From Rhodosorus marinus CCMP1338 (lineage: Eukaryota > Plantae > Rhodophyta), in assembly GCA_029953675.1 (NCBI GenBank), contig JAMWBK010000004.1, forward strand, positions 3,127,942 through 3,191,941: a stretch of DNA of 64,000 nt, read 5' to 3'. Both the position numbers and the translations under genes were made by a program. A model generated the notes under the pieces. It made no database searches, was not told the origin of the DNA, and worked only from the letters and a program-made list of their open reading frames with translations. Shown in pieces: positions 3,401 to 64,000 of the stretch. Positions within the stretch are counted from its first letter, which is position 1. Every line of letters begins with the position of its first letter.

Positions 3401-3929
3401 GCAGAGTCGGGCAGCGCCTCGTTGAATGACGGATCAGAGTCGAATGGCAGCTCACAAGGACAGCAGATGAGGAATTCCAAGACAGCTCCGAAAAAGGTAC
3501 TACGGGCTTCCTGAAGCCATGCTGAAAATTTCCCTCGAGCATCCTCCATATGATTTCTGACTTGAAACCGGGAACTTAGAAAATGTCCAACAAGGAACGG
3601 AAAGAGTATGAATCCATTCTGGGGGAAATTGACAAACTAGCAGCGCGTCAAGCAGATCTCGAGTCCACTTTAGTCTCAGGAAACCTGGACTACGATCAGC
3701 TTTCAAGCAGAACAGAGGAGCTTGTGAGTTTGCAAGAATCTTCTTTCCACATTTGCGTTCGGATACAACGCATGCGTTCCGTCATCAAGTTGATGGAGCG
3801 GAGAAATTTGTTCTGAATCTCTTAACATTCGTTTTGGAAAATCCACTGCGCCTTCAGGCTTCCGTAAGCACTTCCATTGACGAAAAAACCAATAGGTGGA
3901 TGGAGCTCGAAGAAATGTATGGGTCGTAA
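495..3929 (+). CDS. ABC-F family ATPase (Uup/ABCF-like), plastid-targeted, multi-exon
   Basis: ATG 495 begins MAFIGQVSLGG (transit-peptide-like). Two ABC cassettes: GVNGAGKSTLL, LSGGQQKRVALA, LILDEPTNHLD, then GGNGVGKTTFL, LSGGEKRRLQL, LVLDEVTNDLD. Last exon RWMELEEMYGS* ends at TAA 3927-3929. Exon limits by eye. Confidence 0.9.
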
Positions 3930-11363: not shown

Positions 11364-12455
11364 ATGAAAAAGAAGGGGAAGGTTCGGACAGCACGAAGGT
11401 CTAGTACGACCCGACCGTCCAAGGGGCGGGAGAAGAAGCCTCGAAAGTCGAACAGGTACGAGAGAAGGATTCGTGAACCAGATGCTCCACCGTCAAAGTC
11501 TGAGATTGATGATGACGGAGTCCCACGGAAGGTAGCGCAGTACCCCTACTCTAGTCCAAAGCAGCCATATACTAAGTTAAGTACTGGCTGGCATATTAGG
11601 CACGAGGAATGTTCGCAACAGCGGTTGTTGCACGGAAGAGACACGTTCTTGACAACGGAATGGACGGTGATAGCCCAAGAAAAAGGGGCAACCATAGTGT
11701 TAAGCCTGCTGTCGCCAAGCGTGGCTCGGAGACTCCAACCGTCCCTGATGCGGCTACGAAGCGGAAATATGTTGCCGAAGTGCTTGACAAGCAGTTGCCA
11801 GGTGAAACCTTAAACGATTTTGAGCGGCGTCTCAAACGGGGCACAGAGAGGATCTTAATGGGTGCCGAGACCATCACCCGTGAGAGAAGCGAGAGCAGAA
11901 AGCTCAAGAATCAAAGACGAAAGGAAAAGTCAAAAGCTCGATTTCAAGCTCGAAGCAGACGGAACACGGAGGAGGACGATTGGAGCGGAAAGCAACCAGT
12001 GGTTGGGTTGAGCACTAGTGCTTCTGAACCGCCCCGGATTACTATTCTTCCAAGGCAGAGGTGACATGGTCCTCAGAAGCCTCGAGTGGTCGCTAGAGGA
12101 ACGCACAACATGCGATTTCTGTGAGGTGAGGTTCAGTGCGACGACCCAAGCAACCTTTTTTACTTGATGATGAGTTTTCGAGATTTCTGTCTGAACCAAG
12201 AGATTGGTCATGATTAGAAACTTTGTTACATACCCTTTACCTACACTGAGAGCTTTTTCGTGGAGATTTTCGAGTTCAGGCAACACCCAAAGAGCATTCC
12301 TCTTACTCGTGATGTTTTATTGTCTTTCTGTGTTCAGGCGAATCGAAGTCAAAGAGCGACCTGCTCCTCTAAATGATCCGATCCGAAGATCAGGCATTGG
12401 AGCCATCCGCTCCATAAAAGTTCAAGATGATAGCTTTTGTGGCGGGTTGGGATGA
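11364..12455 (+). CDS. CCDC137-like basic coiled-coil nucleolar protein, multi-exon
   Basis: K/R-rich N-terminus, PGETLNDFERRL and EPPRITILPRQR resemble CCDC137 motifs (recognised from memory). Confidence 0.5.
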
Positions 12456-40847: not shown

Positions 40848-40935
40848 GGTTAGGTTAGTCTGGGGTTTGTCTGGAAAGTTTACGGTTGCGTTAGTCTTGG
40901 TCTGGGGATTGTTTGGATTAGTCTGGGTCTGGAAA
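40848..40935 (+). repeat. Degenerate telomeric repeats separating tandem elements
   Basis: GGTTAGGTTAGTCTGGGG, GGTTGCGTTAGTC, GTCTGGGG and TTAGTCTGGG variants. Confidence 0.8.
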
Positions 40936-42972
40936 GCACAGCTTGTTCGTGGTGAGAAGCAGGAGGAAAGCATTTCCAACGTTGGTGAGCCCCCCCCCGT
41001 GGGGGAGGAAAACCCAAGCAGTGAGAGTGCCCAGCGGGGTGACAATTTCCGTCTCGTTGATCCGCTTGAGGAGGGGGAACTCGACGAAAGCCAAGTGCAG
41101 TATATACCTGAGGTTGCACACTGTGATTCTCCAACGGAAACAATGGACACTGCGTCCACGGTTCAAGAAGAGGAATTTCTACAGGACTTCATGGATAAGG
41201 TCTCGAAGTACACCGCCCTTTACGAAGATGTTGGGGTGGAAGCTGCAGAGATGCAGCGATTTTTTGTCAATGTCGATCGTTTATACACCAGGGCAGGCAC
41301 AACCGCCGATCTGAAGGGGATCAACGATCATCTGGAGCGGTTGGGTGCAAACCCCATGCTGTGGAACCCTTCAGAAGTGCGCAACGCAGGGCACCAGCGT
41401 CGTGGACAGAACGCGAAGATACCCTATCAATGTTGGAGTCAATCCAGAGATCAATGAACCGAGCTGTTTGGGATGGGACACCGTGAGCAACAAGACACCC
41501 TGGGACAACCGCAATTAGGACAGCAGACTATGGGACAGTCGAATGTGGGGCAACAGACTCCGGGACAGCCCGGGGTGGGACAGCAGGATCTCGCATTTCC
41601 CGCCCCAGGACATACCGCTCCCAGTGGCACCTACGCACAGCGTGCGGCCAAGGCAGCCGGCATGCGTCAACAGACAGCCCTCCGACAACTGCACGCCACG
41701 GTTGGAGGGAGTAGATGGGGCCCTGATACACACCCGGTGCTCGCGACGTTGCGCAACGTACGCCCGCCGCGCAACGAATTGGTGGCGCTCTCGGATTACA
41801 AACAAGTCCTGTGCACAGCGTTGGGTATTCCGGTACACCTGATTGCACATATCGATTTTGTTGCCACCCACGCACTGCTGGTATGTCATCCTGGCGCGAT
41901 ACCGTTGATCACCAGCGCCATTGCGAGGGGAGTGTTCCGCTCAGGTGTGTTCGGATCCTTCGCGAGACGCCGCCAAGATCACCAGGTAACAATACACACC
42001 GGAGTCGAGCCAGAAGCGCGCAACCTGATTGGGTACAATGAGAGGCTCACACTGCAGCCACATGAAGTTAGCCAACGCACACTTGAACGAGCCATTGAAC
42101 AGATGGAGAGAGTTAAGCGCCTGATTTCCCTGCGGTCGATGCCGTTCACTACCTCGGCTTCCATACATGCGCACCTGGAAGCTCGCATGGAGTATCTGCG
42201 CTCGTGCCTCGAGTCGCAGGAACCCGCAGCCCAGCGCCTACTGTCACGGAAGGAGAGAGTGAGATCCCCATGCAGGCAGGAGCCGATAACGAAGGTGCAC
42301 TGATCCCTGAAGTCACACCGGGCAATGCACAAAATGAATTACCGCCAGATATTGGACCCTCTGAAACTTCGGGTACCGGCAGCCCAGAGGCCCAGCCGAG
42401 CAGTATGGAAGTGGTTCATGATGAAAATACCCCCCCCCACCGACGAGACACGATCTCTCAAGAAGCCGAGACAGGAGGATACCCCATCTGCGCCCGAAAA
42501 CGCCCAATCATGTTCGTCCCAGGTTCGAGAAAGCGGTCGCGAGACACCGCGCTGATCACCACGGATCCAGAGGCTTGGGAACAACGGCTTCACATGTTCC
42601 TAGTTGCGCACACGGATGACGGCCGCCGCTGGTGGATGGTCACACATAGCCCCGTACGGACCCGTGAACACGTACCTAATGCCCAGGTCAAGCATTGGAA
42701 CCTACTACTCCACCGTGCTCTAGGTCTCGCATTGAACACTGCAGCGGCTCCGCTTTTACGCCTCTTCATCATGGCACTACCTGGCCTGGCGCTAGGGATC
42801 TGTGATCTTCAGACCGGGGAACAAATGGGGCATCTCTTGGAGGGGTGATTTCTCAGTTGTATGGAAGGCGTTAAATGTGGCGGCCACCAGTCAGCCCTCT
42901 CCTCGTGAGAGGAGAGCGGATAACCAGAGACATACATGGAAGGATAAACAGGTTGTGAAGCTTGCACGTCTC
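40936..42972 (+). mobile_element. 5' part of a telomere-targeting element (ORF1 with in-frame stop and frameshifts; ORF2 start at ATG 42510), cut off at the Ty3 LTR
   Basis: ORF1 core QLHATVGGSRWGPDTHPVLATLRNVRPPR is shared with ORFs at 55902 and 58682. ORF2 N-terminus TDPEAW...WWMVTHSPVRTREHVP...KQVVKLARL. Confidence 0.88.
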
Positions 42973-43267
42973 AACAGCCAGCTGGGTATTACTCAAATTA
43001 TTCCATATTTCGAGTTTTATTCCCCCCCCTAATTACTCCCAAATTAGGTAATATATCCCAATTCTATCTTGTTCTTCTCTATCTTCTCCTTGTCTTCTCT
43101 CCAGCTAACCTGGGAATATCGAGTTTGCCCATCGTACTTATACTCTTGCTCCATCGGGATGTGCAATAACGATTAAGCTCAAAAGGGTGTTGCACCTCCA
43201 GAGATTTTGGCACAGCCCGAGCATAATTTTGCATAGCCGGACATTGCTGGAAGGTGGAGACGTCACA
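42963..43267 (-). repeat. 3' LTR of the Ty3/gypsy element
   Basis: Near-identical to 47996-48286; terminal inverted repeat TGCACGTCTC...GAGACGTCACA. Confidence 0.9.
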
Positions 43268-46200
43268 TCCCTCCCACCGAAGAAGAAGCGCGGGGTCGGG
43301 CAGATTCTGCAGCACGATGAAAAATCATGTAGTAGCGAATTTGCCTTTTTGTAGCAGAGGTGTGTGGCAACTGGTGAGCTGCAATCCATCGAGCATCAGC
43401 TACAGTTTCACCCTCGAAGTATACCATATATTCGCTGGTTCCCTCTGGTTTCATACGATGACCAAGTACGGATGCGATTTCGCCTCCAGTCGCTGCTTCA
43501 GCTACCAACTCGGGTATGTCGGGTTGTACGTTGTCGGGAGAACCGACAACTTTCCTCAGCAGGGAAACGTGGAACGTTGGATGTACCTTCATTTCGGTTT
43601 GTAACTGCAGGGTATAAGCGACATTGTTCACCTTACGCTGGATTCTGAAGGGTCCGATGTATCGAGGTCTGAACGGTTTGGGATCTCGTAGCTGCAAGTT
43701 CGTGGTTGATAAGAGCACCATTTCGTCAGGGAAAAACTCAGGGTCTCGCCTTCCCGCGTCGTAGCGGATTTTCTGTACTTGCTTTGCGTACAACATGTTG
43801 TTCCTTGCTGCCATGTATTGATCCTGCTGATGCCGTAGCAAGGCTTCGGCTGCTTCGGGTATTGGTGAAGTGGTAGCTTCCTCTGCACGTGGTACTATGA
43901 ATGCTCCGGGTAACTCGGGGTTTCGGCCGTACAAAAGTTCAAAAGGTGAGTACTTAGTAGATTCCGAGATTTGCGTGTTGTAGACCAACTCCGCCATGGG
44001 AAGATCTGCGGCCCATGTAGTTCGGGTACTGTTGCATCGGAGGTATGTCTCCAACGTCTGATTGACTCGCTCCGTTTGTCCGTCCGTTTGCGGGTGATAG
44101 GCTGTACTCAAATTCGTTCTGACCTTAAGTATACCCATCAGTCGTTGCCAGAATAGGCTGGTGAACTTAGAATCCCGGTCTGAAATTATGGTTCGGGGTA
44201 ATCCCGCGAACCGTACCCAGTGTTCGAAGAATAATTCTGCCGTTTTCGCCGCATCTGCGTCCGTCCGGGTTGGTATAAATTTCGAATATTTTGTGAAGCG
44301 ATCGACAATTACTAGGATTGCATCAGCTCCCGATGTAGTCATGGGAAGACTAACGATGAAATCCATGGTGATGTCCTGCAACTTTGTTTCTGGTACAGGT
44401 AGCGGCTGTTGAAATCCTTGTTATGCCAGGAGTGGTTTCTGCTTTTGGCAGATTTCGCACTTTCCAACCATTGATTGAACGTCATCCCTCATTGTGCGCC
44501 AATAATAACGTCTCTTCAAAAGGTTGACTGTTTTATGAAGACCGAAATGTCCTCCCGTGGGTTCCTCATGATATCGCCGTAGTAAGTCCGGTACGAATTT
44601 CTGGGGCACACATACTCGATGGTGCCTGAACAATATGTCTTGCTTCTTCCGAAACCCTTGTTCCACATATTTGTTAGCTTCCAGATGAATTGCTTCGAAG
44701 TCAGGGTCCTGTGCGTAGGCTTCCGACCAGTTTTCATAAGGTAGAACGCTGTACATCGCCAACTGGTTGATTGCTCCCCGGCTGAGTGGGTCCGCAATAT
44801 TTTCCGCCCCTTTCTTGTATTCGATATCGAAGGAAAACGGCATTAAGCGATTCACATATCTCGCCTGTCTCTTGGTAAGCTCCTTTTGCGAGTGTAGAAA
44901 ACGCAAAGGGTTATGGTCGGTGCGAAGCACGAAGCGTTGCGCCTCTATATATGTCCGCCAGTGTAGTATTGCCAGGGTCAACGCGTATAACTCTCGTTCG
45001 TACGTTGAATATTTTTCCTCCGTAGGAGTAAACCTCTGGGAGTAGTACGCGATCGGGTGTTCTCCGTCTTCAAACGTCTGTAGTAGTACTGCGCCCATTC
45101 CCTTGTTACTAGCATCGGTACAAATCGTAAAGGGTTTATCGAATTCCGGGTTACGCAGAACCGGCTGCTGCTTCAGTTTCTCTCGTAGGGTATCAAAAGA
45201 TTCTTGTTCCTCTGGTCCCTACTGAAAATCCACGTTTTCCTCGTAAGGTTGGTGAGAGGTGCTGCTACAAGGCTAAACTTGGGCACGTAGTTTCGTAGAT
45301 ATCCGGTGAAGCCCAGAAAAGACCTTACGTCATGTACATTCCGCGGAATCTCCCAATTCGTTAAGGCGGCAACCTTGCTGGGATCGGGTTGGCGTTGTCC
45401 ACTGCCTACTATATGTCCCAGATACTTAGTCTCCGGCACTCCGAATACGCACTTCGATCGCTTTGTATACAGCTTGTTAGCTCGTAACTTCGTAAAAACT
45501 TTGGCTAGGTGCTGCTTGTGGTCAGCCATATTCGAAGAGTATATAATGATATCGTCAAAGAAGATAGTGACGAAGTCATTCAACTCATCGAAGAAGATGC
45601 TGTTGAGCAATCGAGTAAACACCGCAGGAGCGTTTGTGAGACCAAACGGCATCACTAACCACTCGTAAAGACCAAATGGCGTCGTGAACGCTGTTTTTGG
45701 AATGTCCTTCTTCTCCACGCGTAGTTGCCAGTAACCACTCCTCAAATCGATCACACTGAGATGTGTGGCTTTGCCGAGAGCATCTAGACAATCGTCTATC
45801 CTTGGCGGGCTGGTCTTGTTGACGATGGTTGCCTGGTTCAGTTTGCGGTAATCGATGCACAATCGCCGCCCACCATCTTTTTTGTCCACAAAAAGACAGG
45901 GTGAAGCAAAAGGCGACGAGCTAGGTCGAACGAGGTTTTTGCTCAGCAAATCTTGTAGTTGAGTTTTCAGATCCTTCTGATCTGCAAGACTCATTCGGTA
46001 TGGTCTTTGGGATGTTGGTTCAGTTCCCGGTTTCAGATCAATTGTAAAGTTGACGTTTCGCCAAGGGGCCAGGTTCTTAATGTCTTCCACAAAAACGTCA
46101 CCGTATTTATCCGTAATAAATTCCTCCAGATCTTTCGCCTCTTCCAGTCGTTTTTGTGTAAATTTCGTTATATTTTTGATTTCGGGTTCCTCCAATGTTT

Positions 46201-46974
46201 CACCTCTGACCAACTTCGTTTGATTCGTTACATTTTTCTGGTTCTGCACAACTAATTTTTCAGTAATGTCTTCACAAGGTGCTTTTCAAGGTTTCCTTCT
46301 GTGTAGTTGTCTAGGCTTTCCTCCGTATAATTTTCAGGTTCTGAGTGCTCAGGTTGTTTGTCGGGTTGTTCAGGTTCTACTTCAGGGTTTTGTTCAGGTT
46401 CGGCTTCAGGGTTTTGTTCAGGTTCTTCTTCATTGTAATTCTCCGGGTTTTCAGGGTTGTGTTCAAGGTGAGCAGCAGAACATTCAGCTGCTTCTGGTTG
46501 ATTTTCTGGTTCTTCAGGATTTTCTGGTTCTTCGGGATTTTCTGGTTCTTCGGGATTTTCTGGTTCTTCAGGATTTTCTGGGTTATTTCCTTCGTTGGGG
46601 TTCAGTGTCAGCGCCTGGTTTGATAGATCGAGTTGCGCCTTATATTTGTGGAGGAAATCTCTTCCCAGATACCCTGGGCTTGTGGCGTCTTCTACAACGT
46701 AAGGTCGCCAGTTGAAGCTGTGACCGCCCAGTTGTAAGGTTACCTTGGCTTCGCCCAAGATGCTTATGGATGTGCCTGGCGAGGCCGTGTCCAATTTCCC
46801 GTGTTGGGTTGAGATAATTGGAGCAGCATCTGGAATACCTCTCAAAACAGAATGACTGCTGCCGGTATCAACTAAGAGAGAAATCTCTCGACCTTTGATC
46901 CGCCCAACTAGTGTCATATCTGCCGTCAATGGGATCGAGACGCCTGGGTCGGCAACAGTGTCGGCGTGTGTCAC
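43263..46974 (-). pseudogene. pol: Ty3/gypsy Pol (PR-RT-RH-IN-chromodomain) broken by two frameshifts and two in-frame stops
   Basis: ORF pieces 46252-46974, 45173-46249, 44421-45098 and 43263-44381. TAG replaces the conserved W near 45220; in-frame TAA at 44421-44423. Confidence 0.88.
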
Positions 46975-47684
46975 TGCCGCCCCTCGTTTAACTGTTGGGT
47001 TCGTGGAGGTGTAGACTTCGAGACTGTCGGGTCCCGATCAGGGTTGTTCCAGCAGATCCTTTGTGTATGCCCCTTCTTCCCGCAGTAGTTGCAAACAATG
47101 TTGGTGTAGTTACGCTTCTGCAGCGCTTGCGTTCCGGGTTGGTAAATGCGTCCAGACCTGGTTCCCCTGCTTACAGTGGTCTGGGGCGTTGCCATTTTTT
47201 TGGGAAATTTCTCTTCCCGTCTGGAAGGTTGGCTGGCTGCCTCAGCTCCCTCAATTTTTAGGGCAAGTGCCTGTGCCGCCTCAAAATCCTGCACGTCCTG
47301 TATGTAGATGTATTTCTTGACCTCGGGTTTAAGGCCTTCGACGAAGCGGTCGAATTTCTCTGAATCAGAAATTTCTCCAACCTGGATCAGACATTTGTTG
47401 AAATATGCGGAATATGCTGCTACACTCGTTTTCTGCTCTGCCCGTGCGAGTTGCTGTTTCGCGCGGATCTTAGCGTCCGCTGGGTAGAATTGCGACTTTA
47501 AAGCATCCTCAAATCCAGCGTAGCGCGTGGGTTTTTGCGATTCAGGTATCAGGGACCACCAATACGAAGCGTCGCCAGTGAGATAGCCCTCTGCGAGGGT
47601 AATCTTGTAGTCGTCGTCGTCGTCAGGCAGACGAGCCAACTTAAAATACGTGCGTAGGCTATTCAAGAAGGTACTGATAGTCAA
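46971..47684 (-). CDS. gag: Ty3/gypsy Gag (N-terminus degenerate, extends upstream to about 47846)
   Basis: PKPYDGRRDA upstream, YLTGDASYWW, FVEGLKPEVK, CCHC knuckle. Confidence 0.9.
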   Translation of the reverse strand: MTISTFLNSLRTYFKLARLPDDDDDYKITLAEGYLTGDASYWWSLIPESQKPTRYAGFEDALKSQFYPADAKIRAKQQLARAEQKTSVAAYSAYFNKCLIQVGEISDSEKFDRFVEGLKPEVKKYIYIQDVQDFEAAQALALKIEGAEAASQPSRREEKFPKKMATPQTTVSRGTRSGRIYQPGTQALQKRNYTNIVCNYCGKKGHTQRICWNNPDRDPTVSKSTPPRTQQLNEGRQ

Positions 47685-48286: not shown

Positions 48287-51073
48287 GCTACCAATAATAC
48301 TATGACAGCCTGTCGATTTCAAAAGTAACCGTGCGTGCGGTATACTTTTTGTAGTTTGGCTCCAATCCCTGGCGTTGGACAGTTTTTGGTTTCGTGAGGG
48401 TGTATGGTGCTGGCTTTTGGTGGTTTTGAGTCGCAATTGTGTTCTTCGGTGGGAGGCGCTTCTTTCTGCAGCCTTTTCCCCCGCATCTTCTAGTGGTGTG
48501 GTGCGTGCTGGGGGTTGCTAGCGCCCCTTGGAGGTCGGGGTGGTTTTTCTTTGGTTGCAAACGTTGGGAACAAGTTCTCTTTTTGGGGGTTTCGTGGGGA
48601 ATCGGTTTTTCACACCTTCCAATCGTAATGGTTGGGGTTTCCCCACCCATTCCGGCGGACGGAGCCGTTCTCTCAGCGCGCGTGGAGCTCAGCGTGGGCG
48701 GGTTTAGTACCGCGGCCACCCTCACGGACTGCGCTGACGAGTTAGCCCATGGGATCTGCTCGAAACTGACGAGTCTTATTGTGACTGCTTCCCAGGAACA
48801 CCGCCTGCCCCTGCTGATCGCCTATTTGGAGCGCTTCTCCGCCTCCGCGCCTGCCCCATACCCCCCGGTGCCCGTCCCCGCGGATCCGCACGGTACAGCG
48901 GGGCCTGCCTCCACCCGACCCGAGCGCTCCGCTCCGGTCATTCCTGATTCCGCCTGGCCTACCCCTATTCAAGGACAGACGCCTCCTGGGCCCACGTCGG
49001 GCCCGAATCCTGCTCCCTCCAGTGCCCCACGTGCGACCTATTCGCAGGTCCTGCGCAGGGGCTCTTCTGAACAACGCACGACGGCAATGGTGCGTATGAT
49101 GCCACAACACATCCCTATTGACTCTTCTCGCCAACTATCTCCGTTCCACTTTGTTTGGATGACGAACGTCCCCAGACCCCCTCTCGTGGTCGGGGCCGCG
49201 CGCCCGTCAACTACCGCGATTTTCGCGACACCATGGCTTCCTCCCTTGGGGTCGCCCCGTCTGAATTCCTATATGTGGACTTCACGGCCCTCATGCCTGT
49301 TTTCTTGTTACGGACTCGGCTTACCAGTTCCTTCAATCGCTTGTAACCACCCCCGCGCCCCAGCGCTCAGCTCTGGCCAACATGATACTGACTCGTCCTC
49401 ATGTCTCTTTGTTTGTCGAGTTCGATCGTTTTGACGCCGGCTGGGTTCCTCCGTCAGCCTTGCAAAACCTGGATGCCTCGCAGGCTTCGGTTGTCGCGCT
49501 ACACACTCATGCGGCGCGGCTCTCGCGCATACAGGCGAGCCTCTTCGCGCGTTTTCCTCCTCGCGGGGTCCTCCGCACCGCGCTAGAGGCCTTCCTCTCC
49601 ACTGAGGCCACCCTGCTGGAAGCCCACCCTGCGTTTGACCTTCTGCCGCCGACTCTTGAGCACCCTTCCTCCCCTCGCCCTGTCTCCGAGGCTCGTGACA
49701 CCGACATGGCAGAAGCACCATCGGCCTCTCCGAATCCGCTGGCTAAGGACACCCTCAGTGAAGACTCCGCTGCTGAAAACCCTGTGTCTACTTTCTTCAG
49801 GTCTTTTAGTTCCTTCGTGCCCCCCCCACGTAAGCGTCGTGCGGCTCCTGAGCCTCCCTCCGAGGCACCTCCTCCGGATATTCGATCTGCCTTCCCAACT
49901 GAGGGGAGGCCCGATGTCTGAGTCTTCCTCCTCCTCGTGCGTGTCGTCCCGGTTACCCTTGTTTACCAGTGACCGCTCAGCCTGGCATGAGCGTGTTCTC
50001 TCGTGGTTTTCGCACCTTGTCGCCTCCTACCCGGACGGTTCCCTTCCCCTTTGTCGTCAGAGCACGGCCGTACGGCTCCCTCGTCGACTTCATAAGCCCC
50101 TAGGATTGGTGTTGGATTTTCTCTGGCAGCAGGTCGCCGCGAACCCTCACTGCTCTCTTCGCTGGGAACTCTTGTTCTTTTTTCCCCGCCTCGTGCTCAC
50201 CTCCTCTACCGTCCCCCTCAACCCACATCCTCGCCGGGTCCACCCTCGCCGAAAACTGCAAATGTTCCTTTCCGGCGACTTTGAGGACCTCGAACATCTT
50301 TATTTCGCTTCTCTCTCTTCCTTTTCTCCTAGTGCTCCCTCAGCTTTTAGGTCTTCTCGACAGAATCGGGCGCGTCACGCGGTGGCAGGCGGTGATCTGC
50401 GGCGGGCAGCCGGGATCCTCCAGCAGCGGCAACCTGTGGTTCCATACTCCGATGATCTTTCTTCACCGCTCCGTTTGCTCTTTCCCTCGGAAGGCTCCCC
50501 TTGGGACTCCTCGTTTGAATCACTGTTGGAAGAGTACCGCGCCGCGCCAAATCCCAGTGCGCGGTTAGTGGTCAATCTGGAGGAGGTGCGTGAGTTGGTT
50601 CATGATGCTCCGAAGGGCCGTTCCCCAGGGCCCTCGGGGCTGCGGGTGGAATATCTCCGTTTCTTAAGTGATGAAGGTTTGAAGGCGTTGGCGTGGGTGG
50701 TCGAAGCGCTTGTGAATGGTGATCCCCTGTGTGAGTGTGCGTGGTTCTTGGTCGGGCGTTCGCAATTGTGTCTGCTTTCAAAGCCCGGCCACACGGCCTC
50801 GAGCCCTGCTATTCGCCCTATTGGCCTGGTTGAGATGGTCCGCAAATTGGCGGCGCAATGGTTAGTGAAAATCCTGGTTCCCGAATCCCGCCGTTTCTTT
50901 GGGCACGTGCAGTTAGGCGTGGGCTATCGTGGTGGCTGTGAGTTGTTGTCTGTTTTACTCCGTTCGGAAATGGCGTACTCCCCAGATTCTGGGCTCCTCT
51001 CTGTAGATTTACCAACGGAGAACGTGTCAGCTACCAATAATACTATGACAGCCTGTCGATTTCAAAAGTAACC
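48285..51073 (+). repeat. 46-bp direct repeat pair (48285-48330 and 51028-51073)
   Basis: CAGCTACCAATAATACTATGACAGCCTGTCGATTTCAAAAGTAACC is present identically at both positions. Confidence 0.95.
48331..51010 (+). mobile_element. Divergent CRE-like non-LTR element (family C): frameshifted ORF1, ORF2 from ATG 49914, 3'-truncated inside RT
   Basis: WELLFFFPRLVL, GRSPGPSGLRVEYL, LSKP...IRPIGLVEMVRKL, VQLGVGYRGGCE; breaks off at LLSVDL. ORF2 ATG overlaps the ORF1 TGA (ATGTCTGA 49914-49921). Confidence 0.85.
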
Positions 51074-53680: not shown

Positions 53681-54281
53681 CTTTTTCTTTCACAAATCGA
53701 TCATTATGTTTATAGTTTAGGGAAACAATGAACTGTGTCTTTTGTTATTTTGGGAAATAATATAAACAGGTATGGATTGATATATTTAGGTGTTAGGAAT
53801 TTTCTCAATTAGCTTAAATAACTTTTGGAATTTTTGCATGTTTCTCCGATTTGGTTATTGTCGGGCTTGGTATGGGTTTCGGAAGGAAGGAAGGATTTAA
53901 TCGGAGGCTAAAAACAAAAACCCCGAGGGAAAAAAGACTAAGCACCGCGAAGATCGCGGGCCTCCAATAACAACGCAGCGTTCATACGCCACAGCAAGAA
54001 GCTCAGGCGAGTAAACAAAGATTGTAACCGGTCCGGGCGTTCGCGAAATATCTCCCGTAGCCAACGAGATCCAACGGAGTCCACAAAGCCGAAGGATTCG
54101 ATGACCACACGTACCTCGGGGGGGGGGGGTAGACAGTGCTTTTCGGAAGGCGCGTACTTCGAGTGAGCGCTACGCTATAAGAAGCTTTGGACAGAGGTTT
54201 GAAGACAGTTGGGGTGGTTGAAGGTCAACACCTATTAAACAGAGGACAGGTAAGAAAAAAAAAAAAAAAGGGGAAGAGAAA

Positions 54282-55376
54282 ATGGCGAATACAATACTGT
54301 TCGGATTGGTTTTGGTGGTGGCACTCTACGTGAGTGCCGCTCAGCAAGCGAATGTGGTGGTCGTCACTGGGGATAATCAGAACATCATCCAGCTCAACCA
54401 TGCGCACACGATGGACATTGTGCAGACTATTCAGCATAGTGAAAAGAAGCTGTTTCAGGTCCTTTCGCTGGCGACAAATGTGTACGTGTCGGCCGTGAGT
54501 ACCCCCAGTAACTACCCCCAGGCTGAGATTCTGATGTATGAAGTCCAATCCGGAACGAACACGCTTAAGTTTGTGCAAAAGGCGACGTTCGCACCTGATT
54601 GTGGGCAGCCGGTCGCGTTGACAGCAAGCTACGACTACACCGACCAGGCGGTGCTGGCTATGACGTGCTCGGATACCGAATGGGTTGTGGTTATGGATGC
54701 GTGGACACTGTCGGTGGACCAGATAGTTGGGAAACCTAGAATCAAGGACATCACTATCACAGGTATCACCGAGTCTGCGTTGACCGCCAAGTACCTCTAC
54801 GTCACCTACGGCATCAGCGCTGTTGACAACGACGACAAGGGTTTGCTGGTCCAGTACAGCCGGACCACCCCGTATGAGATCCTCAACACCCTCGTAGTTC
54901 GTGGTCAGTATTCTCACCTCTTGATCGCCGGAGGCAGTAATCTTTTCCTGACGACGTCGGGCAACGGCCCATCCTACCTCCTCCAATTGAACCCAAACAC
55001 CCTCGAGGAAATTGATCGGAGAAGCCCAAAGAACCTCGATTTTCTCCGGATGACCATGAGTCCCGACCAGCTGAGTATGTACATGTACGTTCAAAATCCA
55101 AATGGGAGAAGGGGAAAAATTCGAAGCTTCGACCAGAGGAGTTACCCGGCCCAGAAGTATTGCCCCGATGTCGAAATCGACTTGCCCCCTGGCACCCAAT
55201 CCATCGTCGTCGAGGGCTACCTGTTTATCAGGACCGCCGGGACGGTGACAAGGTTAAACCTCGTGGATGAAACCGGATGTCCCAGTCCGGATGTTCAGGG
55301 CAACATTATTCTAAACGACGACGTAGTTTACTCTGGCGTTGCTATGGCCTGCCTGGAATGCCTTCCGATCGCTTAA
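54282..55376 (+). CDS. Secreted 364-aa protein, probable beta-propeller fold, intronless
   Basis: Signal peptide MANTILFGLVLVVALYVSAA, ~45-aa beta-rich repeats (KYLYVT, NLFLTT, SMYMYV, YLFIRT), paired cysteines. Confidence 0.8.
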   Translation: MANTILFGLVLVVALYVSAAQQANVVVVTGDNQNIIQLNHAHTMDIVQTIQHSEKKLFQVLSLATNVYVSAVSTPSNYPQAEILMYEVQSGTNTLKFVQKATFAPDCGQPVALTASYDYTDQAVLAMTCSDTEWVVVMDAWTLSVDQIVGKPRIKDITITGITESALTAKYLYVTYGISAVDNDDKGLLVQYSRTTPYEILNTLVVRGQYSHLLIAGGSNLFLTTSGNGPSYLLQLNPNTLEEIDRRSPKNLDFLRMTMSPDQLSMYMYVQNPNGRRGKIRSFDQRSYPAQKYCPDVEIDLPPGTQSIVVEGYLFIRTAGTVTRLNLVDETGCPSPDVQGNIILNDDVVYSGVAMACLECLPIA

Positions 55377-55784: not shown

Positions 55785-57726
55785 ACTGGCGAACCCCCCC
55801 TGACTGGGGAGGGAAACTCGACAAATGGTACCTGTGCACCCGGGGGAGAGAATCTCACCCAAGCTGATCAACCACGGGAAGCGGAACACGCAGAACAGTG
55901 TGTGCCCTCTGACCACGATGCTCACCAAGGAGAAAATACTGACGCAGAGATGGAACCAGCGCCCGCCTCTCCAGATGTTGATGCCGTACAAGAGGTCTTG
56001 AGGCAGCTGGCTAAATACACCGACTTTTACAGGGATGTTGGGGTCTGTCGGACGGAGATCCTTCGATTCTTTACGGGCGTACACAAGTTATATTCGAGAG
56101 CAGGGAACACCGGCGACCTCAAAGGCATCACCGACAGCATCGAGGAGCTGAGCGAGAACCCCCTTACCTGGGTCCCTGGGGCACAACAACCACCCGGCAG
56201 ATCTGGGGGTGAGCGGCCTGCTCAGATACCCAATCAACTGGGGAATCAGCCTCCGTTGGTCACCAACTTGGGACACCGACAAATGGGACACCCGCACCTG
56301 GGACAGGCGAGGACTGGAGCACCCAATTTTGGCAATATGGGACAAGCTGGGCTGGTGGGCCAGGGACAGCCAGGACAGCAGCCGCTGGGACAGTCCCATC
56401 CCGGCACCATGGGACAGGAGAACGAAGAATTTCCAACTTTGCTACAATCAGTTTCTGGGTTCTCCCTGGGACACACCACCCCGGGACATACCCCTGTAAG
56501 TGGAACCTACGCCCACCGGGCCTCTAAGGCAGTGGGCATGAGACAACGCACTGCCTTACGCCAACTCCATGCGACCGTAGGAGGCAGTCGATGGGGTCCG
56601 GACACCCATCCGGTACTGGCAACCTTGCGCAATGTTAGGCCGCCGCGCACAGAGGTGGTGGCGCTGGCAGACTACAAGAAAGTGCTCTGCACGGCTCTGG
56701 GCCTACCGGCACACCTGATCGCGCACATTGATTTCGTCGCCACCCATGCGACGCTGATCTGCCACCCAGATGCCATGCCGCTTATTACCAGCGCAATTGC
56801 GGGGGGAGTTTTTCGCACCGGAGTGTTCGCTTCGTTTGCAAAGCGCCGACACGACCACCAAGTGATGGTGCACACGAGTCACGAGCCAGATGCCCAGAAC
56901 CTACTCGGGTACACCGAGAGACGCGGCCTGCGTCCGGAAGAAATTGCACCGCGGACCATCGACCGCGCTATCGAGCAGGTGCAGCGCATGAAACACACCA
57001 TGACTCTGCGGGCGCTTCCGTTCTCGACGTCTGCGTCGATCCATACGCTCCTTGACGCACGCATGGAGTATCTGCGGACAAACCAGAGTTCTCTAGCACG
57101 AAAGGGCGATCCTGAGAGCCTCCCTGCGATGGGAGGTTGTGAGGCGAGGGTGAACACCGCGGGGCACGACTCCGCCAACGCCGAGGCCTCCATGGCTGCG
57201 AACGAAGGGGAAACCACCACTGAAGAGGACGAAAATCCTCATGCAGAGTTGCCCATTAACCTGGACACAGCACCACCGTGCGAGAGCACTATGAACGCCA
57301 TCGACCAGTCAGCCTCGATGGAATTCGAGCATGGACAGGAGGAAGATGCTGACGACAACCCGCACGCGGAGCTCCAGTGCAACATCCAGGAGCCTCCTAA
57401 GCAGAAGCGCACGCGCGTGGACGCTACGGCAGTCGCAGATGAGAGCATGGAGATGGACACCCAGGACGGCCAAGACAATACTCCCCAGTAATGCCGAGAC
57501 GCCCCACGAGTACTAAACGCCCGCGCGACGACTACACACCGAGCCCCTCTCGCTCACCTCGCAGAGCAAGCGCTCACCGACAACGACCTACTCCTGGGGT
57601 GCTGATAACCACCGACCCTGAAGCATGGCAGGCAAAACTCCACACGTTCCTGGACACCGCAACAGACTCCGGACGGTACTGGTGGATGGTCACCAACAGC
57701 CCAGTACGCACTCGAGAGCATGTCCC
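55785..57726 (+). mobile_element. Telomere-targeting element family D: ORF1 (open 55785-57491), TAATG, first ~78 codons of ORF2; 3'-truncated
   Basis: Follows CTGGGGTTACGTTAGTCT (55767-55784). ORF1 is homologous to ORF 58682-60265; ORF2 stops abruptly at TREHVP in telomeric repeat. Confidence 0.9.
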
Positions 57727-57752
57727 TAGTCTGGGGTTACGTTAGTCTGGGG
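57727..57752 (+). repeat. Perfect telomeric repeat tract capping the truncated family D element
   Basis: TAGTCTGGGGTTACGTTAGTCTGGGG. Confidence 0.92.
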
Positions 57753-57827
57753 GGTAACCCCTGACCAATAGGATCCTTATTGCTTCTTAATGGGCTCCAA
57801 TAGGGAGTTCTTCAGTAAAGTGTACGC
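57753..57827 (+). mobile_element. ~75-bp 3' tip of a further family
   Basis: GCTCC-AATAG-GGAGT hairpin and CAGTAAAGTGTACGC end, then GGTTACG. Confidence 0.6.
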
Positions 57828-57847
57828 GGTTACGTTAGTCTGGGGTT

Positions 57848-58557
57848 ACAACGGAGCAGTGCACCAGTTGCCGTAGGAAACATGGCCCAAATGGGGTGCA
57901 ACGATTTCAACACTGTCCAACATCGACGGGACTATGGCAGAGACGGCACGACGAGCTCTGTACGGAGCTAGGGAGATGGCTCAACCGATGGAATTTTCTT
58001 GACATACAGCAAGAACCGCAGAGGTATTTTGAGAATTACCAGCTGCGACCAGATATCGTGGCGACCCATCCAAAGACCTTTCAAAAGTACGCGATCGATG
58101 TGACGGTGATTTCACCGCTACAGGAAAAGTACATAAGGCGTGGCAGTGCAGAAAACGGGTATGCAGCGAAACTGGCGGAGAACTACAAGCTCGCGCACTA
58201 TAAAGAGGCGATGAGTGTGGAAAAGCCCGAGGAGAAGTTCATCCCGATCGCGATAGAGACCTTTGGGCGGAGCGGGAGGTTGACGCAAGACTTTTTGCGG
58301 GACAGTTGTAAACACTTGTTGCATCGAGATGAGGAGCTGAGGGATGCACGATCCCAGTTAAACAGGATCCTATGGCAGGGCAACGCGGCGATTGCGCTTG
58401 GCGCTCTACGTGCGGACCAGTTGGAGAACCCACTGGTTCCTGTTTTTTCTTTTGAACGTAGCATGAGACCCCGGTAGCGGGGTTGTTGTGAGTGATTCCC
58501 TAGATAGCAATCGGCTTAGTGTTACGTCGCATTAGGCGACTGCCCAATAAAGCTCAC
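57848..58557 (+). mobile_element. 5'-truncated copy of family B (about 710 bp)
   Basis: Matches 62772-63481 with one difference noticed (CTG vs CTA near 58340 / 63263); flanked by telomeric repeats. Confidence 0.95.
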
Positions 58558-58629
58558 GGTTACGTTAGTCTGGGGTTTACGGTTACGTTAGTCTGGGGTT
58601 ATGACGATAGTCTGGGGTATCTGGGGTTA
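58558..58629 (+). repeat. Telomeric and variant repeats between elements
   Basis: Two perfect units plus GATAGTCTGGGGTATCTGGGGTTA variants. Confidence 0.9.
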
Positions 58630-58681
58630 TTGGATAAGGTTCGCAATTAAGTTTGTAGGTTTGGTTCGCCTGGGGTAAAAT

Positions 58682-60265
58682 ATGCCAAACACTGGCACTT
58701 CCCCTCTGTTTGGGGAGGGGAATTCGAAGAATACCGGTGCAATGAGCGGAATGCTGCCTGCCTCTCCAATTGCTGAACGAGAGGACGGGCATGGGTCACA
58801 TGATGGACTACAAGCGACTACTTTACGCCCAGAAGAACCGTGCCAGGAGGGGAGTCGGACAGAGCCTTCTACGTCATTCTCTCCCGCTAACACGTTCCTC
58901 CACCAACTTCGAAGCTACGATCAGTGCTATCACGCCCTCGGAATTGGGGAGCAGGACATCGCGAACTTCTACAAAGCAGTCTTCAATCTCTACTCGCGCA
59001 TTAACAGTACCACAGAGATACATAATGTCACCAGCCGCCTCACGGAACTTGCACAGAAGCCCCACATGTGGCAAGCTTCTGCACAGACTTCGAATCCCTC
59101 GGGAGCTTCGGCGCATCACCGGCCGACGGCGGTGGTCAATCAACTTGCGGCCGGAACGGGCTTCAATCAAGTTCCAGTCGGGACAGGTGTCCCTGCGGGT
59201 GTCCGGTTTGAGACGGCTTTCCCGGCCCTTGGGAATGACACCCCCAGACCCACCTACGCGGCGGTTTCGGCGGTAGAAGTACCAGAGAACGGTGTAGAGA
59301 CACCCATCCGCACCATGCGAAGGCCTGGGCCGCAGACGCAACATGCCGCCCTGAAGCAGTTACACGCCACAGTGGGAGGGGCCAGCTGGGGCCCTGAGAC
59401 CACGCCAGTGCTTGTTACCCTCCGAAATATCCGTCCCCCACGACAGGATGAGGTGGCTGCTTCTGACTTCACTACGGTCCTCTGCCGGGCGTTGGGCATT
59501 CCCGGCTCGTATGTGGCGCATTTGGACTTTATCTCTTCACACGTGAGCCTCGTGTGCCACCCTGATGCAATTCCTCTTCTCCAAAGCGCAATCAGCCGGG
59601 GTGTGTTCCGGACTGGGATTTTCGGATCCTTTACCATGCGACACCCCGATCGACAGGTGAGCCTGTACACCGGGCACGGTTTAGAGGCGGATAACCTGCT
59701 GGGGTTCAACGAGCGGCAACGACTCGCCGGCGGAGATGTCAGGGCTCAAACGCTGAGACGAGCGATCGAGCAGATCATACGCATCCGCGCGCGGCTGAGC
59801 CGTCGACATCTCTCGTTTACAACTCTCGCCCGAGTGCACGAGATGCTGGACCAACGGCTTGAAAAGTTACAAGCCCTTCAACAGCAACCTGCGGTATCCA
59901 GGGAGAGCGCGGAACCCCTAACGACTGCAGCCGCACCAAACGCAGCCGCTGAAGCCTCGTCGTCTCCGGACGATGCACAGGCAGCCTGTGGGACTGTTGC
60001 CACTCAGGGTGACTCCGGTGGAACATCCCAAGTACCGCAGGATGTGGAAGAAGAGGACAATCCCCATGCGGAACTCTCGTGCAACTTGCCGGAACCTCCT
60101 CAACTTAAGCGCTCGCGCCGGTCTGCCAACGGATCTAGCACGGATGCAGAAATGACACCAGCTCCCCTCGACCCCACACCGAGCGAGAATGGACTACAAC
60201 CTGAAACTGCAGCCAATACAAACCCGTCGGTTCAGCAGGAAGCGCAGGACAACGAGCAATCATAA
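58682..60265 (+). CDS. ORF1 protein of family B (527 aa, no recognised family)
   Basis: ATG-initiated intact ORF with homologues in three other elements in the window. Confidence 0.88.
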   Translation: MPNTGTSPLFGEGNSKNTGAMSGMLPASPIAEREDGHGSHDGLQATTLRPEEPCQEGSRTEPSTSFSPANTFLHQLRSYDQCYHALGIGEQDIANFYKAVFNLYSRINSTTEIHNVTSRLTELAQKPHMWQASAQTSNPSGASAHHRPTAVVNQLAAGTGFNQVPVGTGVPAGVRFETAFPALGNDTPRPTYAAVSAVEVPENGVETPIRTMRRPGPQTQHAALKQLHATVGGASWGPETTPVLVTLRNIRPPRQDEVAASDFTTVLCRALGIPGSYVAHLDFISSHVSLVCHPDAIPLLQSAISRGVFRTGIFGSFTMRHPDRQVSLYTGHGLEADNLLGFNERQRLAGGDVRAQTLRRAIEQIIRIRARLSRRHLSFTTLARVHEMLDQRLEKLQALQQQPAVSRESAEPLTTAAAPNAAAEASSSPDDAQAACGTVATQGDSGGTSQVPQDVEEEDNPHAELSCNLPEPPQLKRSRRSANGSSTDAEMTPAPLDPTPSENGLQPETAANTNPSVQQEAQDNEQS

Positions 60266-63200
60266 TGCCGTCCAGACGCAGGGGACGTAAACGCCCACGA
60301 GAAGAGCCTCTGTTCTTCTCTGACCGGGAGGCCTGGATTTGCCGCTGGAACGCTTTCGTAGCTGAGATCACGGAGGAGGGGAGGCATTGGACGCGCATCA
60401 CACATTGCCCGGTGCCCACACGACGCTTCGTGCCCCGAGCACACGTTTCTACATGGCGCCGGCTTCTTCGGGCTGCCCTCGAGCTTTCTCTGGACGCGAC
60501 AGCACCTCCATTAGCGAGCCTGCTTCTCGTCGGCCTTCCGGGTCTGGTCCTGGGCCACTCCACCCTTGACACAGGGGTACAGGTCGCACATGTACTAGAA
60601 GGAGAGTTCCAGCGGGCCTGGACGGCCCTTGAGGAGAAAGCCGCCTCAATGAAACCCCCACCTACACCACACGGTGCCGAAGACGTTCGTCGACGAGTCG
60701 ATGGCCGCCGCAAACAAGCACTTAAACTAGCACGACTCGGCCGCCTCTCGGATGCTGCAAGAAGACTCGAGGCCACCGAAATGGCGCCTTTCACAGCGGC
60801 TACCTGGCGGCAACTACAACAGCTCTTTCCGAGCCCCGCCAGTGTGGATTCACCGGTGGAGATTGTGGAAGCCCTCCAAGGCCTACTCACGACGGCCAAC
60901 GACACACTGAAGAGGCGGTGGGATCCAAAAACGGCTGCCGACGAAGGCCTCCTCTCAATCGTGGCACGACTACCTCAAGGGACGAGCCCTGGACCGAGTG
61001 GAATGCGCGCGGAACATTTGCAAGGGGCGAACCAACAGACTCAGGTAGCACTGATTCGGGTCTTGCGCCAACTCGCCACCGCGCCCGGGCGATTCTCACC
61101 CCTTCTGCTACGAGCCTTGCGTAGCAGTAGACTTCTGCCTTTCTCGAAGCCAGCACAGGGGGTAACTCCCAGGCCAAGGCAGGGATCCGCCCAATAGGCG
61201 TGCCGGAGGTCCTACGCAAAGTGGCAACTCAGTGGGCGCTGCGAGCGGTGATGGACCGGGTCCGCGAGCTGTTGGTGCCGTTGCAGCTGGGAATCGGGGT
61301 CAGCGGTGGCTGTGAACGGTCACTGCACGCCATCCAGGCCCACCTGTCATGTGAACCAGACTCGGTTGCACTTCGACTGGACCTCGAGAACGCCTTTAAC
61401 CGCATTGATAGGCGAATTGCCAAGAAACTGGTGGCCCAGCACTTCCCTGAGCTCACAGCGGTGTATAGGCTCGGATATGGAGGCGATGGGGAAACACCGA
61501 CGCTTTGTGGATGGCGGACGACGCAAGAAGACAACCACCTGCACAAGGACAGACTGACGCTGCAAGCAGAAACCGGAGTACAACAAGGCGACCCTTTAGG
61601 TCCGGTGCTACATGCGCTCTCCCTGGCCCCTTTTCTCAAGGCACTCAGCAACAAGTTTCAGGGAGTCACGATCGTCGCCATCCATGACGACATCACTCTG
61701 GTCGGCGCATTGCCTATATTGAAGGAGGCTCTCCAATGGGGACAGACCCTGCTACCGTGCCTGGGAGCCCGCCTGCAGCTCAGCAAATGCAGCCTTTATG
61801 GTCGATCCCTCACCACTACACGCTTGGTGAACCGTGCGATTCCCGGCGTGCAAGTGACTAGGGAAGGCCTCACAATCCACTCCATCCCCATCGGCACTCG
61901 GCAGTACATCGAGCACGAGTGTAGACGGCTGCAGAACAAACACGAGACGCTGTTCAAGGAGATTTCGAGCCTGCCAACCGATGAACTGCCTATCCAGCTT
62001 GCGCTTTACAGGTATTGCGCTGAAACGAGGTTGGATTACACCTTGCGATGCCTTGCCTACCCGTTTGGACGAGCTCTGGCCAGGGAAGCGGACAGTATGA
62101 GCAGATACCACTTAGAGGTCTTGTTTGGTGGCCTCTGCACGACGGCCTTGGTCGAGGATGAGCTGATACACCCGGTCAACGAGCAGATTTCGTTGCCCTG
62201 CCGATGGGGCGGATTGGGGTTCGCGACCCGTGCAAGAATACAGCCGATTGCGTTCTTCTCGGCCTGGGCGCAGACCCTGAGAGACCATGCGGGTCAGTGG
62301 CCCTATATAACGGAGGTGGAGCGACAGGTCAGGCAAGGTGGCGACATACACATCAGCCACCTAGGCCGACTGCAGGTGTCAACGGAGACGATCGGTGAGC
62401 AAATCCGCGCGTCTAGTCGTGCTATAGAGCGGAGACTGTGCCCAGACACGGCGCCGCGGATCCGGAGACTGGCCAAGCTGCCCGAATTGAGAGACGAAGC
62501 CGCACCTGAAGTAGCGGACTCCCCTCGCGATTGGAACCATGGTTCAATACAACAAACCCTCTCTAGGGAGGCACACCATCGCGCGTTCCAACGTTTGGTC
62601 GGCAACGAGGGCGTTTCGCATGAACACCGTGCAAGAATCCGATCGGCGGCCGGCTCGGGTTCGGGGGTATGGCTGCGGGAACTACCGTTGCTAGAGCCGA
62701 GAAAGCTGGACTCACAGGAATTGCAGGTAAATGTTCGACAACTGCTGGGGCTGCCGATTCCGGGGTTGCGGACAACGGAGCAGTGCACCAGTTGCCGTAG
62801 GAAACATGGCCCAAATGGGGTGCAACGATTTCAACACTGTCCAACATCGACGGGACTATGGCAGAGACGGCACGACGAGCTCTGTACGGAGCTAGGGAGA
62901 TGGCTCAACCGATGGAATTTTCTTGACATACAGCAAGAACCGCAGAGGTATTTTGAGAATTACCAGCTGCGACCAGATATCGTGGCGACCCATCCAAAGA
63001 CCTTTCAAAAGTACGCGATCGATGTGACGGTGATTTCACCGCTACAGGAAAAGTACATAAGGCGTGGCAGTGCAGAAAACGGGTATGCAGCGAAACTGGC
63101 GGAGAACTACAAGCTCGCGCACTATAAAGAGGCGATGAGTGTGGAAAAGCCCGAGGAGAAGTTCATCCCGATCGCGATAGAGACCTTTGGGCGGAGCGGG

Positions 63201-63401
63201 AGGTTGACGCAAGACTTTTTGCGGGACAGTTGTAAACACTTGTTGCATCGAGATGAGGAGCTAAGGGATGCACGATCCCAGTTAAACAGGATCCTATGGC
63301 AGGGCAACGCGGCGATTGCGCTTGGCGCTCTACGTGCGGACCAGTTGGAGAACCCACTGGTTCCTGTTTTTTCTTTTGAACGTAGCATGAGACCCCGGTA
63401 G
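60265..63401 (+). CDS. ORF2 of family B: reverse transcriptase plus restriction-like endonuclease (~1045 aa; one -1 frameshift near 61160-61195)
   Basis: SPGPSGMRAEHL, GIRPIGVPEVLRK, LDLENAFN, GVQQGDPLGP, AIHDDIT, LQLSKC, CTSC...QHC, RRHDELC, RPDIV, IDVTV, FIPIAIETFG. Confidence 0.93.
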
Positions 63402-63481
63402 CGGGGTTGTTGTGAGTGATTCCCTAGATAGCAATCGGCTTAGTGTTACGTCGCATTAGGCGACTGCCCAATAAAGCTCAC

Positions 63482-63535
63482 GGTTACGTTAGTCTGGGGT
63501 TACGTTAGTCTGGGGTTACGTTAGTCTGGGGTTAC
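63482..63535 (+). repeat. Three perfect telomeric units between elements
   Basis: GG(TTACGTTAGTCTGGGG)3TTAC. Confidence 0.97.
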
Positions 63536-63729
63536 AGGATCCTATGGCAGGGCAACGCGGCGATTGCGCTTGGCGCTCTACGTGCGGACCAGTTGGAGAA
63601 CCCACTGGTTCCTGTTTTTTCTTTTGAACGTAGCATGAGACCCCGGTAGCGGGGTTGTTGTGAGTGATTCCCTAGATAGCAATCGGCTTAGTGTTACGTC
63701 GCATTAGGCGACTGCCCAATAAAGCTCAC
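63534..63729 (+). mobile_element. 196-bp 5'-truncated copy of family B (most distal insertion)
   Basis: Matches 63286-63481. Confidence 0.95.
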
Positions 63730-64000
63730 GGTTACGTTAGTCTGGGGTTACGTCTGGGGTTACGTTAGTCTGGGGTTACGTTAGTCTGGGGTTACGTTAG
63801 TCTGGGGTTACGTTAGTCTGGGGTTACGTTAGTCTGGGGTTACGTTAGTCTGGGGTTACGTTAGTCTGGGGTTACGTTAGTCTGGGGTTACGTTAGTCTG
63901 GGGTTACGTTAGTCTGGGGTTACGTTAGTCTGGGGTTACGTTAGTCTGGGGTTACGTTAGTCTGGGGTTACGTTAGTCTGGGGTTACGTTAGTCTGGGGT
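63730..64000 (+). repeat. Terminal telomeric array (TTACGTTAGTCTGGGG)n, about 16 units plus one 12-nt variant
   Basis: Homogeneous 16-bp tandem array with the G-rich strand running 5'->3' to the end of the sequence. Confidence 0.93.

Follow-up and report, generated by a model that had tools for sequence, protein, structure and literature searches.

How ORF2 is translated from the bicistronic RNA of a non-LTR retrotransposon (one lacking long terminal repeats) is established for only a few elements, SART1 and LINE-1 (L1), both of which carry an apurinic/apyrimidinic-like endonuclease (APE). In SART1, a telomere-specific element of Bombyx mori, the two open reading frames (ORFs) are coupled through a UAAUG (Kojima et al. 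2005, via PMC10275272, PMC5972666 and PMC2699510), and a downstream RNA structure was reported as necessary (PMC10275272, PMC5972666). Comparable viral junctions are the UAAUG of influenza B segment 7 and of the hypovirus CHV1, the AUGA of feline calicivirus and the AUGucUGA of rabbit haemorrhagic disease virus (RHDV) (PMC2699510, PMC10275272); in CHV1, mutation of the AUG abolishes expression (PMC2699510). Human LINE-1 has a 63-nt spacer and an unconventional ORF2 translation (Alisch et al. 2006, via PMC5972666 and PMC2881922). Here we analyse ORF1-ORF2 junctions of non-LTR retrotransposons with a restriction-enzyme-like (REL) type of endonuclease in the red alga Rhodosorus marinus CCMP1338, in a window comprising the last 64 kb of contig JAMWBK010000004.1 (assembly GCA_029953675.1, 3.19 Mb), whose base 64000 is the contig end. 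In two of these elements, families B and D, the ORF1 stop and the ORF2 start share one base within a TAATG. A literature search of incomplete coverage found no paper on Rhodosorus retrotransposons or on stop-start coupling in a REL-type element.

Results

ORF1-ORF2 junctions of families B and D

The family D ORF1 (55902..57491, + strand), an intact open frame of 529 codons as listed with its first in-frame ATG at 55950, ends in a TAATG at 57489..57493 (context CAG-TAATG-CCG), and the intact 527-aa ORF1 of family B (58682..60265, +) ends likewise at 60263..60267 (TCA-TAATG-CCG), with TAA at 60263-60265 and the ORF2 ATG at 60265-60267. Both pentamers had been noticed in a first-pass annotation of the window and are present as described there, the TAA being in each case the stop of a long intact ORF1. 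In both elements ORF2 occupies the -1 frame relative to ORF1 and the junction ATG is the first start codon of that frame, which is closed at 16 codons (D) or 20 codons (B) upstream. This ATG opens a conserved ORF2 N-terminus, M-P-x-R...KRPR[DE][DE], followed by PLFFSDREAW or LITTDPEAW. The next in-frame ATG in B, in D and in B', a third copy described below, lies 195-384 nt downstream and its use would delete the conserved N-terminal domain; the junction ATG is therefore the only one able to encode it. The number of TAATG pentamers in the whole window (70 observed, 91 expected) is uninformative, and it is the position of the pentamer that carries information.

The family D ORF2 (57491..57726, +) retains its first ~79 codons and is cut at 57726/57727 by telomere repeats, which indicates a healed chromosome break. 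That of family B is longer. Its N-terminal part (60265..61197, +; 310 codons) has a basic head resembling a nuclear localization signal, followed by a conserved PLFFSDREAW...THCPVPTRRFVP domain, and the part encoding the reverse transcriptase (RT) and the C-terminal CCHC/REL endonuclease (61182..63401, +) is one base out of frame with it. This shift falls in the interval 61150-61182, close to a G5 run (61158-61162) and just before the RT domain, and the homologous stretch reads in frame in B'. It is either a single mutation or a long-read homopolymer assembly error, the latter being conceivable because the shift adjoins the G5 run; in that case B would be a fully intact element. The ORF2 of B' also carries one frameshift, elsewhere than in B (~11875).

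The near-equal inter-motif distance (221 nt in B, 215 nt in D) combined with differing TAATG offsets raised the possibility of a junction that had arisen anew elsewhere. This was rejected because the first 14 ORF2 residues of B and D align (MPxR....KRPR[DE][DE]); relative to B, the alignment points to an insertion in the ORF2 head of D and a shorter ORF1 tail.

Stop-start juxtaposition in related copies and families

The ORF1 proteins of B and D are 35% identical and the DNA around their junctions is essentially unalignable. Amid this diverged DNA, (R)TAATGCC stands out as identical in B, D and B'. The last of these lies on contig 7 (L001), at a different chromosome end of this genome, with its TAATG at 11396-11400. 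B' represents a diverged subfamily (65-74% protein identity to B), and the B/B' DNA alignment has ATAATGCC as an island of identity within a poorly conserved stretch. The B' ORF1 is frameshifted upstream, but its TAA still closes the frame of the homologous tail, ...CNLPEPPQHKRSR...MDTQDSQETPTQ before the stop, for which the D counterpart reads ...MDTQDGQDNTPQ before the stop.

Other families keep the two codons close with different letters. In L002 (4187 nt, Joint Genome Institute (JGI) sample 3300016967), whose ORF2 is 47% identical, the junction is ATGA and ORF2 is again in the -1 frame. Family C has an 8-nt overlap, ATGTCTGA (49914..49921, +), with the ORF2 ATG at 49914-49916 and the ORF1 stop TGA at 49919-49921; the overlap proposed for it in the first-pass annotation was borne out, whereas the frame given there was not, ORF2 being in +1 rather than -1. 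The family C ATG occupies the position homologous to that of B (M, 13 residues, then PLFTSDRSAW). Its ORF1 is represented by a C-terminal part of ~180 codons with an intact frame (49382..49921, +), the copy being frameshifted upstream near 49400. In a C-like family (L001, L004), a spacer of 31 or 42 nt separates a TAG stop from the ATG that follows.

Overlaps of 1, 4 or 8 nt were thus found in five copies, and spacers of 31-42 nt in the C-like family. Throughout B, D, B', L002 and C, stop and start remain within 8 nt of each other despite changes in flank length, the ORF1 tail after the CNxxEPP motif measuring 36-60 aa and the ORF2 head before D[RP]EAW 18-41 aa; judging from these lengths, both sides of the junction have undergone indels, and in C the relative frame has changed as well. 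In a crude null model, in which the inter-motif region was shuffled and cases with both ORFs viable were kept, a one-base stop/ATG overlap arose in ~2% of cases and any overlap class (-8 to +3) in 11-16%. The persistence of stop and start together, while near-unalignable flanks vary in length, exceeds chance and indicates that selection has acted on their juxtaposition. Given the homology of the ORF1 tails and of the ORF2 heads, the TAATG of the algal families was inherited from a common ancestor and is best read as retained under selection rather than as having arisen repeatedly. The conservation across copies on which the first reading was to be checked is therefore found, as TAATG in B, D and B' and as stop/start proximity in related families.

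Family A, a degenerate copy (42301..42512, +), was expected from the first reading to have an ORF2 ATG at 42510 in the -1 frame that overlaps the ORF1 end. The ATG (42510-42512) is indeed in -1 when compared with the main ORF1 frame, but that frame already ends 207 nt upstream, in a TGA (42301-42303), and nothing overlaps. The A ORF1 has an internal stop at 41455-41457 and a tail shifted into the ORF2 frame, and taken by itself this copy neither supports nor contradicts coupling.

Among more distant sequences, a very GC-rich contig (L003, JGI 3300004791; 30% identity) has ATGAATGA at 6951-6958, at the boundary of a 645-aa ORF and an ORF2 with an N-terminal extension and a zinc-finger-like motif. 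The 645-aa ORF has no similarity to the B ORF1, and DNA of this kind is full of long spurious ORFs. The habit of overlapping may extend beyond Rhodosorus, L003 giving a hint of this in which the upstream ORF is possibly spurious. Two other distant relatives were uninformative, one (L007) with a 164-nt gap to its upstream ORF and one (L008) with a single ORF.

Element identity and target site

From position ~38.9 kb onward to the telomere, the + strand is occupied by non-LTR retrotransposons and their fragments, arranged head-to-tail. ORF2 matched RVT_1 in Pfam (E = 1.7e-7), and this was its only match, located downstream of the N-terminal 310 aa, for which Pfam returned no match and no endonuclease or APE domain. 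A profile built from ORF2 and its relatives matched R2 proteins among solved structures at E = 6e-32 and L1 ORF2p at 1e-10 to 1e-11, the best relatives being R2 and other REL-endonuclease elements (PDB 9nl3, 9dou, 9nl2 and 8gh6). Profile positions 753-901 align with R2 residues 990-1136 (domain E = 5.5e-4) over C..C, RH[ND], EP, [RK]PD, DVTV and K, and CCHC and PD-(D/E)XK-type REL-endonuclease motifs are visible in the C-terminus of the B ORF2.

Four element 3' ends join the 16-nt telomere unit in one register, at 40847/40848 (A-type), 58557/58558, 63481/63482 and 63729/63730, the last three with the junction sequence ...AAAGCTCAC|GGTTACGTTAGTCTGG. The 3' termini read ...AATAAAGCTCAC, or AGTAAAGTTTAC in the A-type. 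Since all four meet the unit in the same register, insertion is indicated to be register-specific and site-specific, and by these matches and junctions the elements are classified as REL-type, R2-like, telomere-repeat-specific non-LTR retrotransposons. Their sense strand is the G-rich strand and their 3' end faces the chromosome end, an orientation in keeping with insertion into the repeat array by endonuclease nicking and target priming, as opposed to addition onto the chromosome end.

The B 3' untranslated region (UTR; 63402..63535, +) holds a 23-mer, GGCGACTGCCCAATAAAGCTCAC, and the telomere repeats joined at the fixed register (63482-63535). The 23-mer is identical in L002, despite the 47% identity of the ORF2 proteins. 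Neither the 23-mer nor the ORF2 N-terminal alignment had a match in a scan of metagenome contigs, a collection that also lacks L002. At the other end of the element, the B 5' UTR (58597..58681, +) consists of degenerate telomere-like variant repeats and a 25-codon upstream ORF (uORF; ATG at 58601, TAA at 58676-58678) whose stop precedes the start of ORF1 by 3 nt. This uORF could be a second place where reinitiation matters, if transcripts start upstream of 58601.

ORF1 matched no Pfam family. The predicted model of its conserved core, of moderate confidence (mean predicted local distance difference test score 69.7), contains a beta-alpha-beta-beta-alpha unit of RRM/ferredoxin-like type; in a fold search against the PDB nothing reached E <= 0.001, RRM-like RNA-binding domains of DbpA/YxiN ranking highest (E ~0.01-0.2). 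RNA binding by the ORF1 protein is at most suggested by this model.

Subtelomeric setting

The window reaches the contig end and closes with an array of at least 17 copies of the 16-nt unit GGTTACGTTAGTCTGG (G-strand GGGGTTACGTTAGTCT), and the region is for these reasons a red-algal subtelomere. The unit is unusually long and unlike TTAGGG-type repeats. Tracts of it occur at 63730-64000, 63482-63535, 58558-58596, 57727-57750, 57828-57845 and 40848-40863. According to the paper describing the R. marinus genome, twelve contigs carry telomeres (PMC10250338); we found no description of the 16-nt unit in that paper, which never uses the word "retrotransposon".

Beyond the cut in D (57727-57850) come repeats, ~75 nt of unrelated sequence, another repeat and, from ~57848, the 3' end of a 5'-truncated B element. 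A 248-nt tandem duplication at 63286-63779 contains the last ~195 nt of B and the telomere repeats twice, and thus represents a very short 5'-truncated B insertion distal to the full B copy. Family A is interrupted downstream by a minus-strand Ty3/gypsy-type LTR retrotransposon (43263-47684) encoding a gag-like CCHC protein, a protease region, an RT (RVT_1, E = 4.5e-34) and an integrase with a Tf2-type SH3 domain. The only annotated gene close to the telomere (54282-55376, +) encodes 364 aa with a signal-peptide-like N-terminus and has no Pfam match; a 324-codon ORF lies antisense to it (54225-55199, -).

The identical 16-nt unit recurs 12 times at 2816-3032 of a 3.5-kb contig from JGI sample 3300017118 (L005). 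Its order is a gene with a HemolysinCabind hit (calcium-binding repeat, Pfam; 71-1993), a truncated B-like RT fragment, the telomere repeats and the ORF1 of a further family (3066-3446; 59% identity to D). This contig resembles a further subtelomere, from the same strain or a close one, and is apparently part of an RNA-derived assembly.

Discussion

The reading that best accounts for translation of ORF2 in these elements is termination-reinitiation on a bicistronic RNA, to which we assign a probability of roughly 0.55. The full-length element RNA would act as a bicistronic mRNA on which ribosomes translate ORF1 (~527 aa) and terminate at the UAA; a minority of the post-termination ribosomes would remain on the RNA and reinitiate at the AUG sharing one base with the stop or, in related families, at an AUGA, a AUGUCUGA or an AUG 31-42 nt downstream. 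Much less ORF2 protein (RT and REL endonuclease) than ORF1 protein would result. Both the bicistronic transcript and the dependence of ORF2 translation on ORF1 termination are what we infer from the junctions; their anatomy, its conservation and the lack of signals for the obvious alternatives are observed directly.

UAAUG, AUGA, AUGUCUGA-type and short-spacer arrangements are the junction classes of established termination-reinitiation systems (PMC2699510, Table 2 and Discussion), which require stop and start to be close together (PMC10275272). In L002 the sequence runs unbroken from the 3' part of ORF1 through the junction and ORF2 to the 3' UTR. Going by the JGI sample series, this contig was probably assembled from RNA. 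Leaky scanning is excluded because ORF1 contains 23-31 AUG triplets.

Several observations weigh against termination-reinitiation. Reinitiation after a long ORF normally requires a helper element. In caliciviruses and influenza B this role falls to TURBS motif 1, a UGGGA complementary to 18S rRNA and flanked by pairing segments; none of the six copies examined has a TGGGA in the 150 nt upstream of its stop. Over 120 nt on either side of the junction, folding z-scores are ordinary save downstream of D (downstream values: B -0.28, D -3.44, B' +1.63 and L002 +0.68, from too few sequences for a covariation test), so that no consistent structure emerges, and a 9-bp hairpin ~30 nt downstream of the B junction is not preserved in B'. 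Every copy seen has at least one ORF2 defect and none is verified as intact; the A copy lacks the overlap; and the C-like family combines its spacers with a variable relative frame, from which it follows that the TAATG pentamer itself is not essential. Finally, L004 begins one base before the ORF1 stop, as a subgenomic RNA might, an assembly break being an equally possible cause. A variant in which coupling works with neither a TURBS-like motif nor a downstream structure, perhaps with help from the peptide of the ORF1 tail or from unstructured A-rich RNA, seems to us quite doubtful.

Some of these same observations would be expected if translation of ORF2 did not depend on ORF1 termination and used either an internal ribosome entry site or a subgenomic or spliced RNA starting near the end of ORF1, the overlap then reflecting compaction only. 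The missing reinitiation-promoting motif or structure, the start of L004 and the tolerance of 31-42 nt spacers in different frames by the C-like family all point that way. We nevertheless consider such independence unlikely, as compaction alone cannot account for a proximity of 8 nt or less while flank lengths and frame relation change, L002 is continuous across the junction, and no Rfam family matched anywhere in the window. It is more doubtful still that the juxtaposition lacks present function, the elements being decaying relics in which TAATG was merely inherited from a common ancestor. The ORF2 defects found in all copies, the clear degeneration of A and C and the truncation of D by a healed telomere suit that idea, as do the homologous positions of TAATG in B, D and B', which imply one origin. 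On the other hand, the ORF1 frames of B and D are intact over ~527 codons at 35% identity, implying that active lineages were long under purifying selection; at such divergence neither a 5-mer free of constraint nor its register would have outlasted the indels on both sides; and ATGA and ATGTCTGA retain an overlap with different letters.

Production of an ORF1-ORF2 fusion through programmed -1 ribosomal frameshifting immediately ahead of the ORF1 stop is very improbable. In its favour, B, D, B' and L002 all place ORF2 in -1 with 11-45 codons of open frame upstream of the ATG, the frame being closed beyond that point across copies, and B contains one X_XXY_YYZ-type heptamer, AAACCCG. D, B' and L002 have no such heptamer, however, and AAACCCG is not known as an efficient slip site; there is no conserved downstream structure; ORF2 is in +1 in family C and separated by a spacer in the C-like family; and in every family the ORF2 homology opens with a conserved ATG.

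Compared with SART1, the algal elements share telomere-repeat specificity, two ORFs, a UAAUG, an ORF2 in the -1 frame and the lack of an intergenic spacer. They differ in that SART1 is of APE type (R1 clade), whereas they are of REL type, lacking an APE domain and carrying a CCHC/PD-(D/E)XK endonuclease at the C-terminus; their ORF1 belongs to no recognised family; the downstream structure that SART1 reportedly requires has no consistent counterpart in them; and coupling, demonstrated in SART1, is deduced here from sequence. They are accordingly not members of the SART1/TRAS family on our analysis, and would work in a SART1-like manner only by extension. The first-pass annotation had proposed convergent use of termination-reinitiation in an unrelated REL-type telomeric element: the REL type and the absence of kinship with SART1 hold, the anatomy fits and the mechanism stays a proposal, whereas "convergent", given the shared ancestry of the algal families, can hold only when these are set against SART1 and the viruses.

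The viral junctions belong to the same classes, the family C 8-mer being identical to that of RHDV, and the algal stop/start overlaps fall inside the ~20-30 nt range that those systems need. Unlike them, the algal copies lack TURBS motif 1 within 150 nt upstream, and their upstream ORF lies on the cellular retrotransposon RNA of a red alga. LINE-1 resembles them as a bicistronic non-LTR RNA whose ORF2 translation depends on translation of ORF1, with a short spacer reminiscent of the C-like 31-42 nt; it differs in being APE-type, in having separated rather than overlapping ORFs and in an ORF2 start with no AUG requirement. With R2 the match covers the RT and the C-terminal endonuclease region and extends to site-specific, fixed-register insertion, but R2 has a single ORF and targets 28S rDNA, in contrast to the separate 527-aa ORF1 and 16-nt telomere repeat target of the algal elements. 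Seen together, the algal junctions look like a new example of a known translation layout, with a mechanism that is expected rather than surprising.

One practical benefit concerns annotation, since the deposited R. marinus gene set calls no gene at the B or D elements and thereby misses two clear ORF1/ORF2 pairs. A REL-type lineage that keeps stop and start together through deep divergence would extend the principle of coupling to the other major branch of non-LTR elements and to red algae, and sibling families with different junction forms are convenient for comparison. If coupling does operate here with neither a TURBS-like motif nor a downstream structure, the doubtful variant named above, the UAAUG, AUGA, AUGUCUGA and 31-42 nt spacer families of one small red-algal genome would constitute a natural mutant series, and reinitiation after a long ORF would be no peculiarity of SART1 and some viruses but a general, perhaps ancestral, solution for bicistronic non-LTR elements, including early-branching REL-type lineages.

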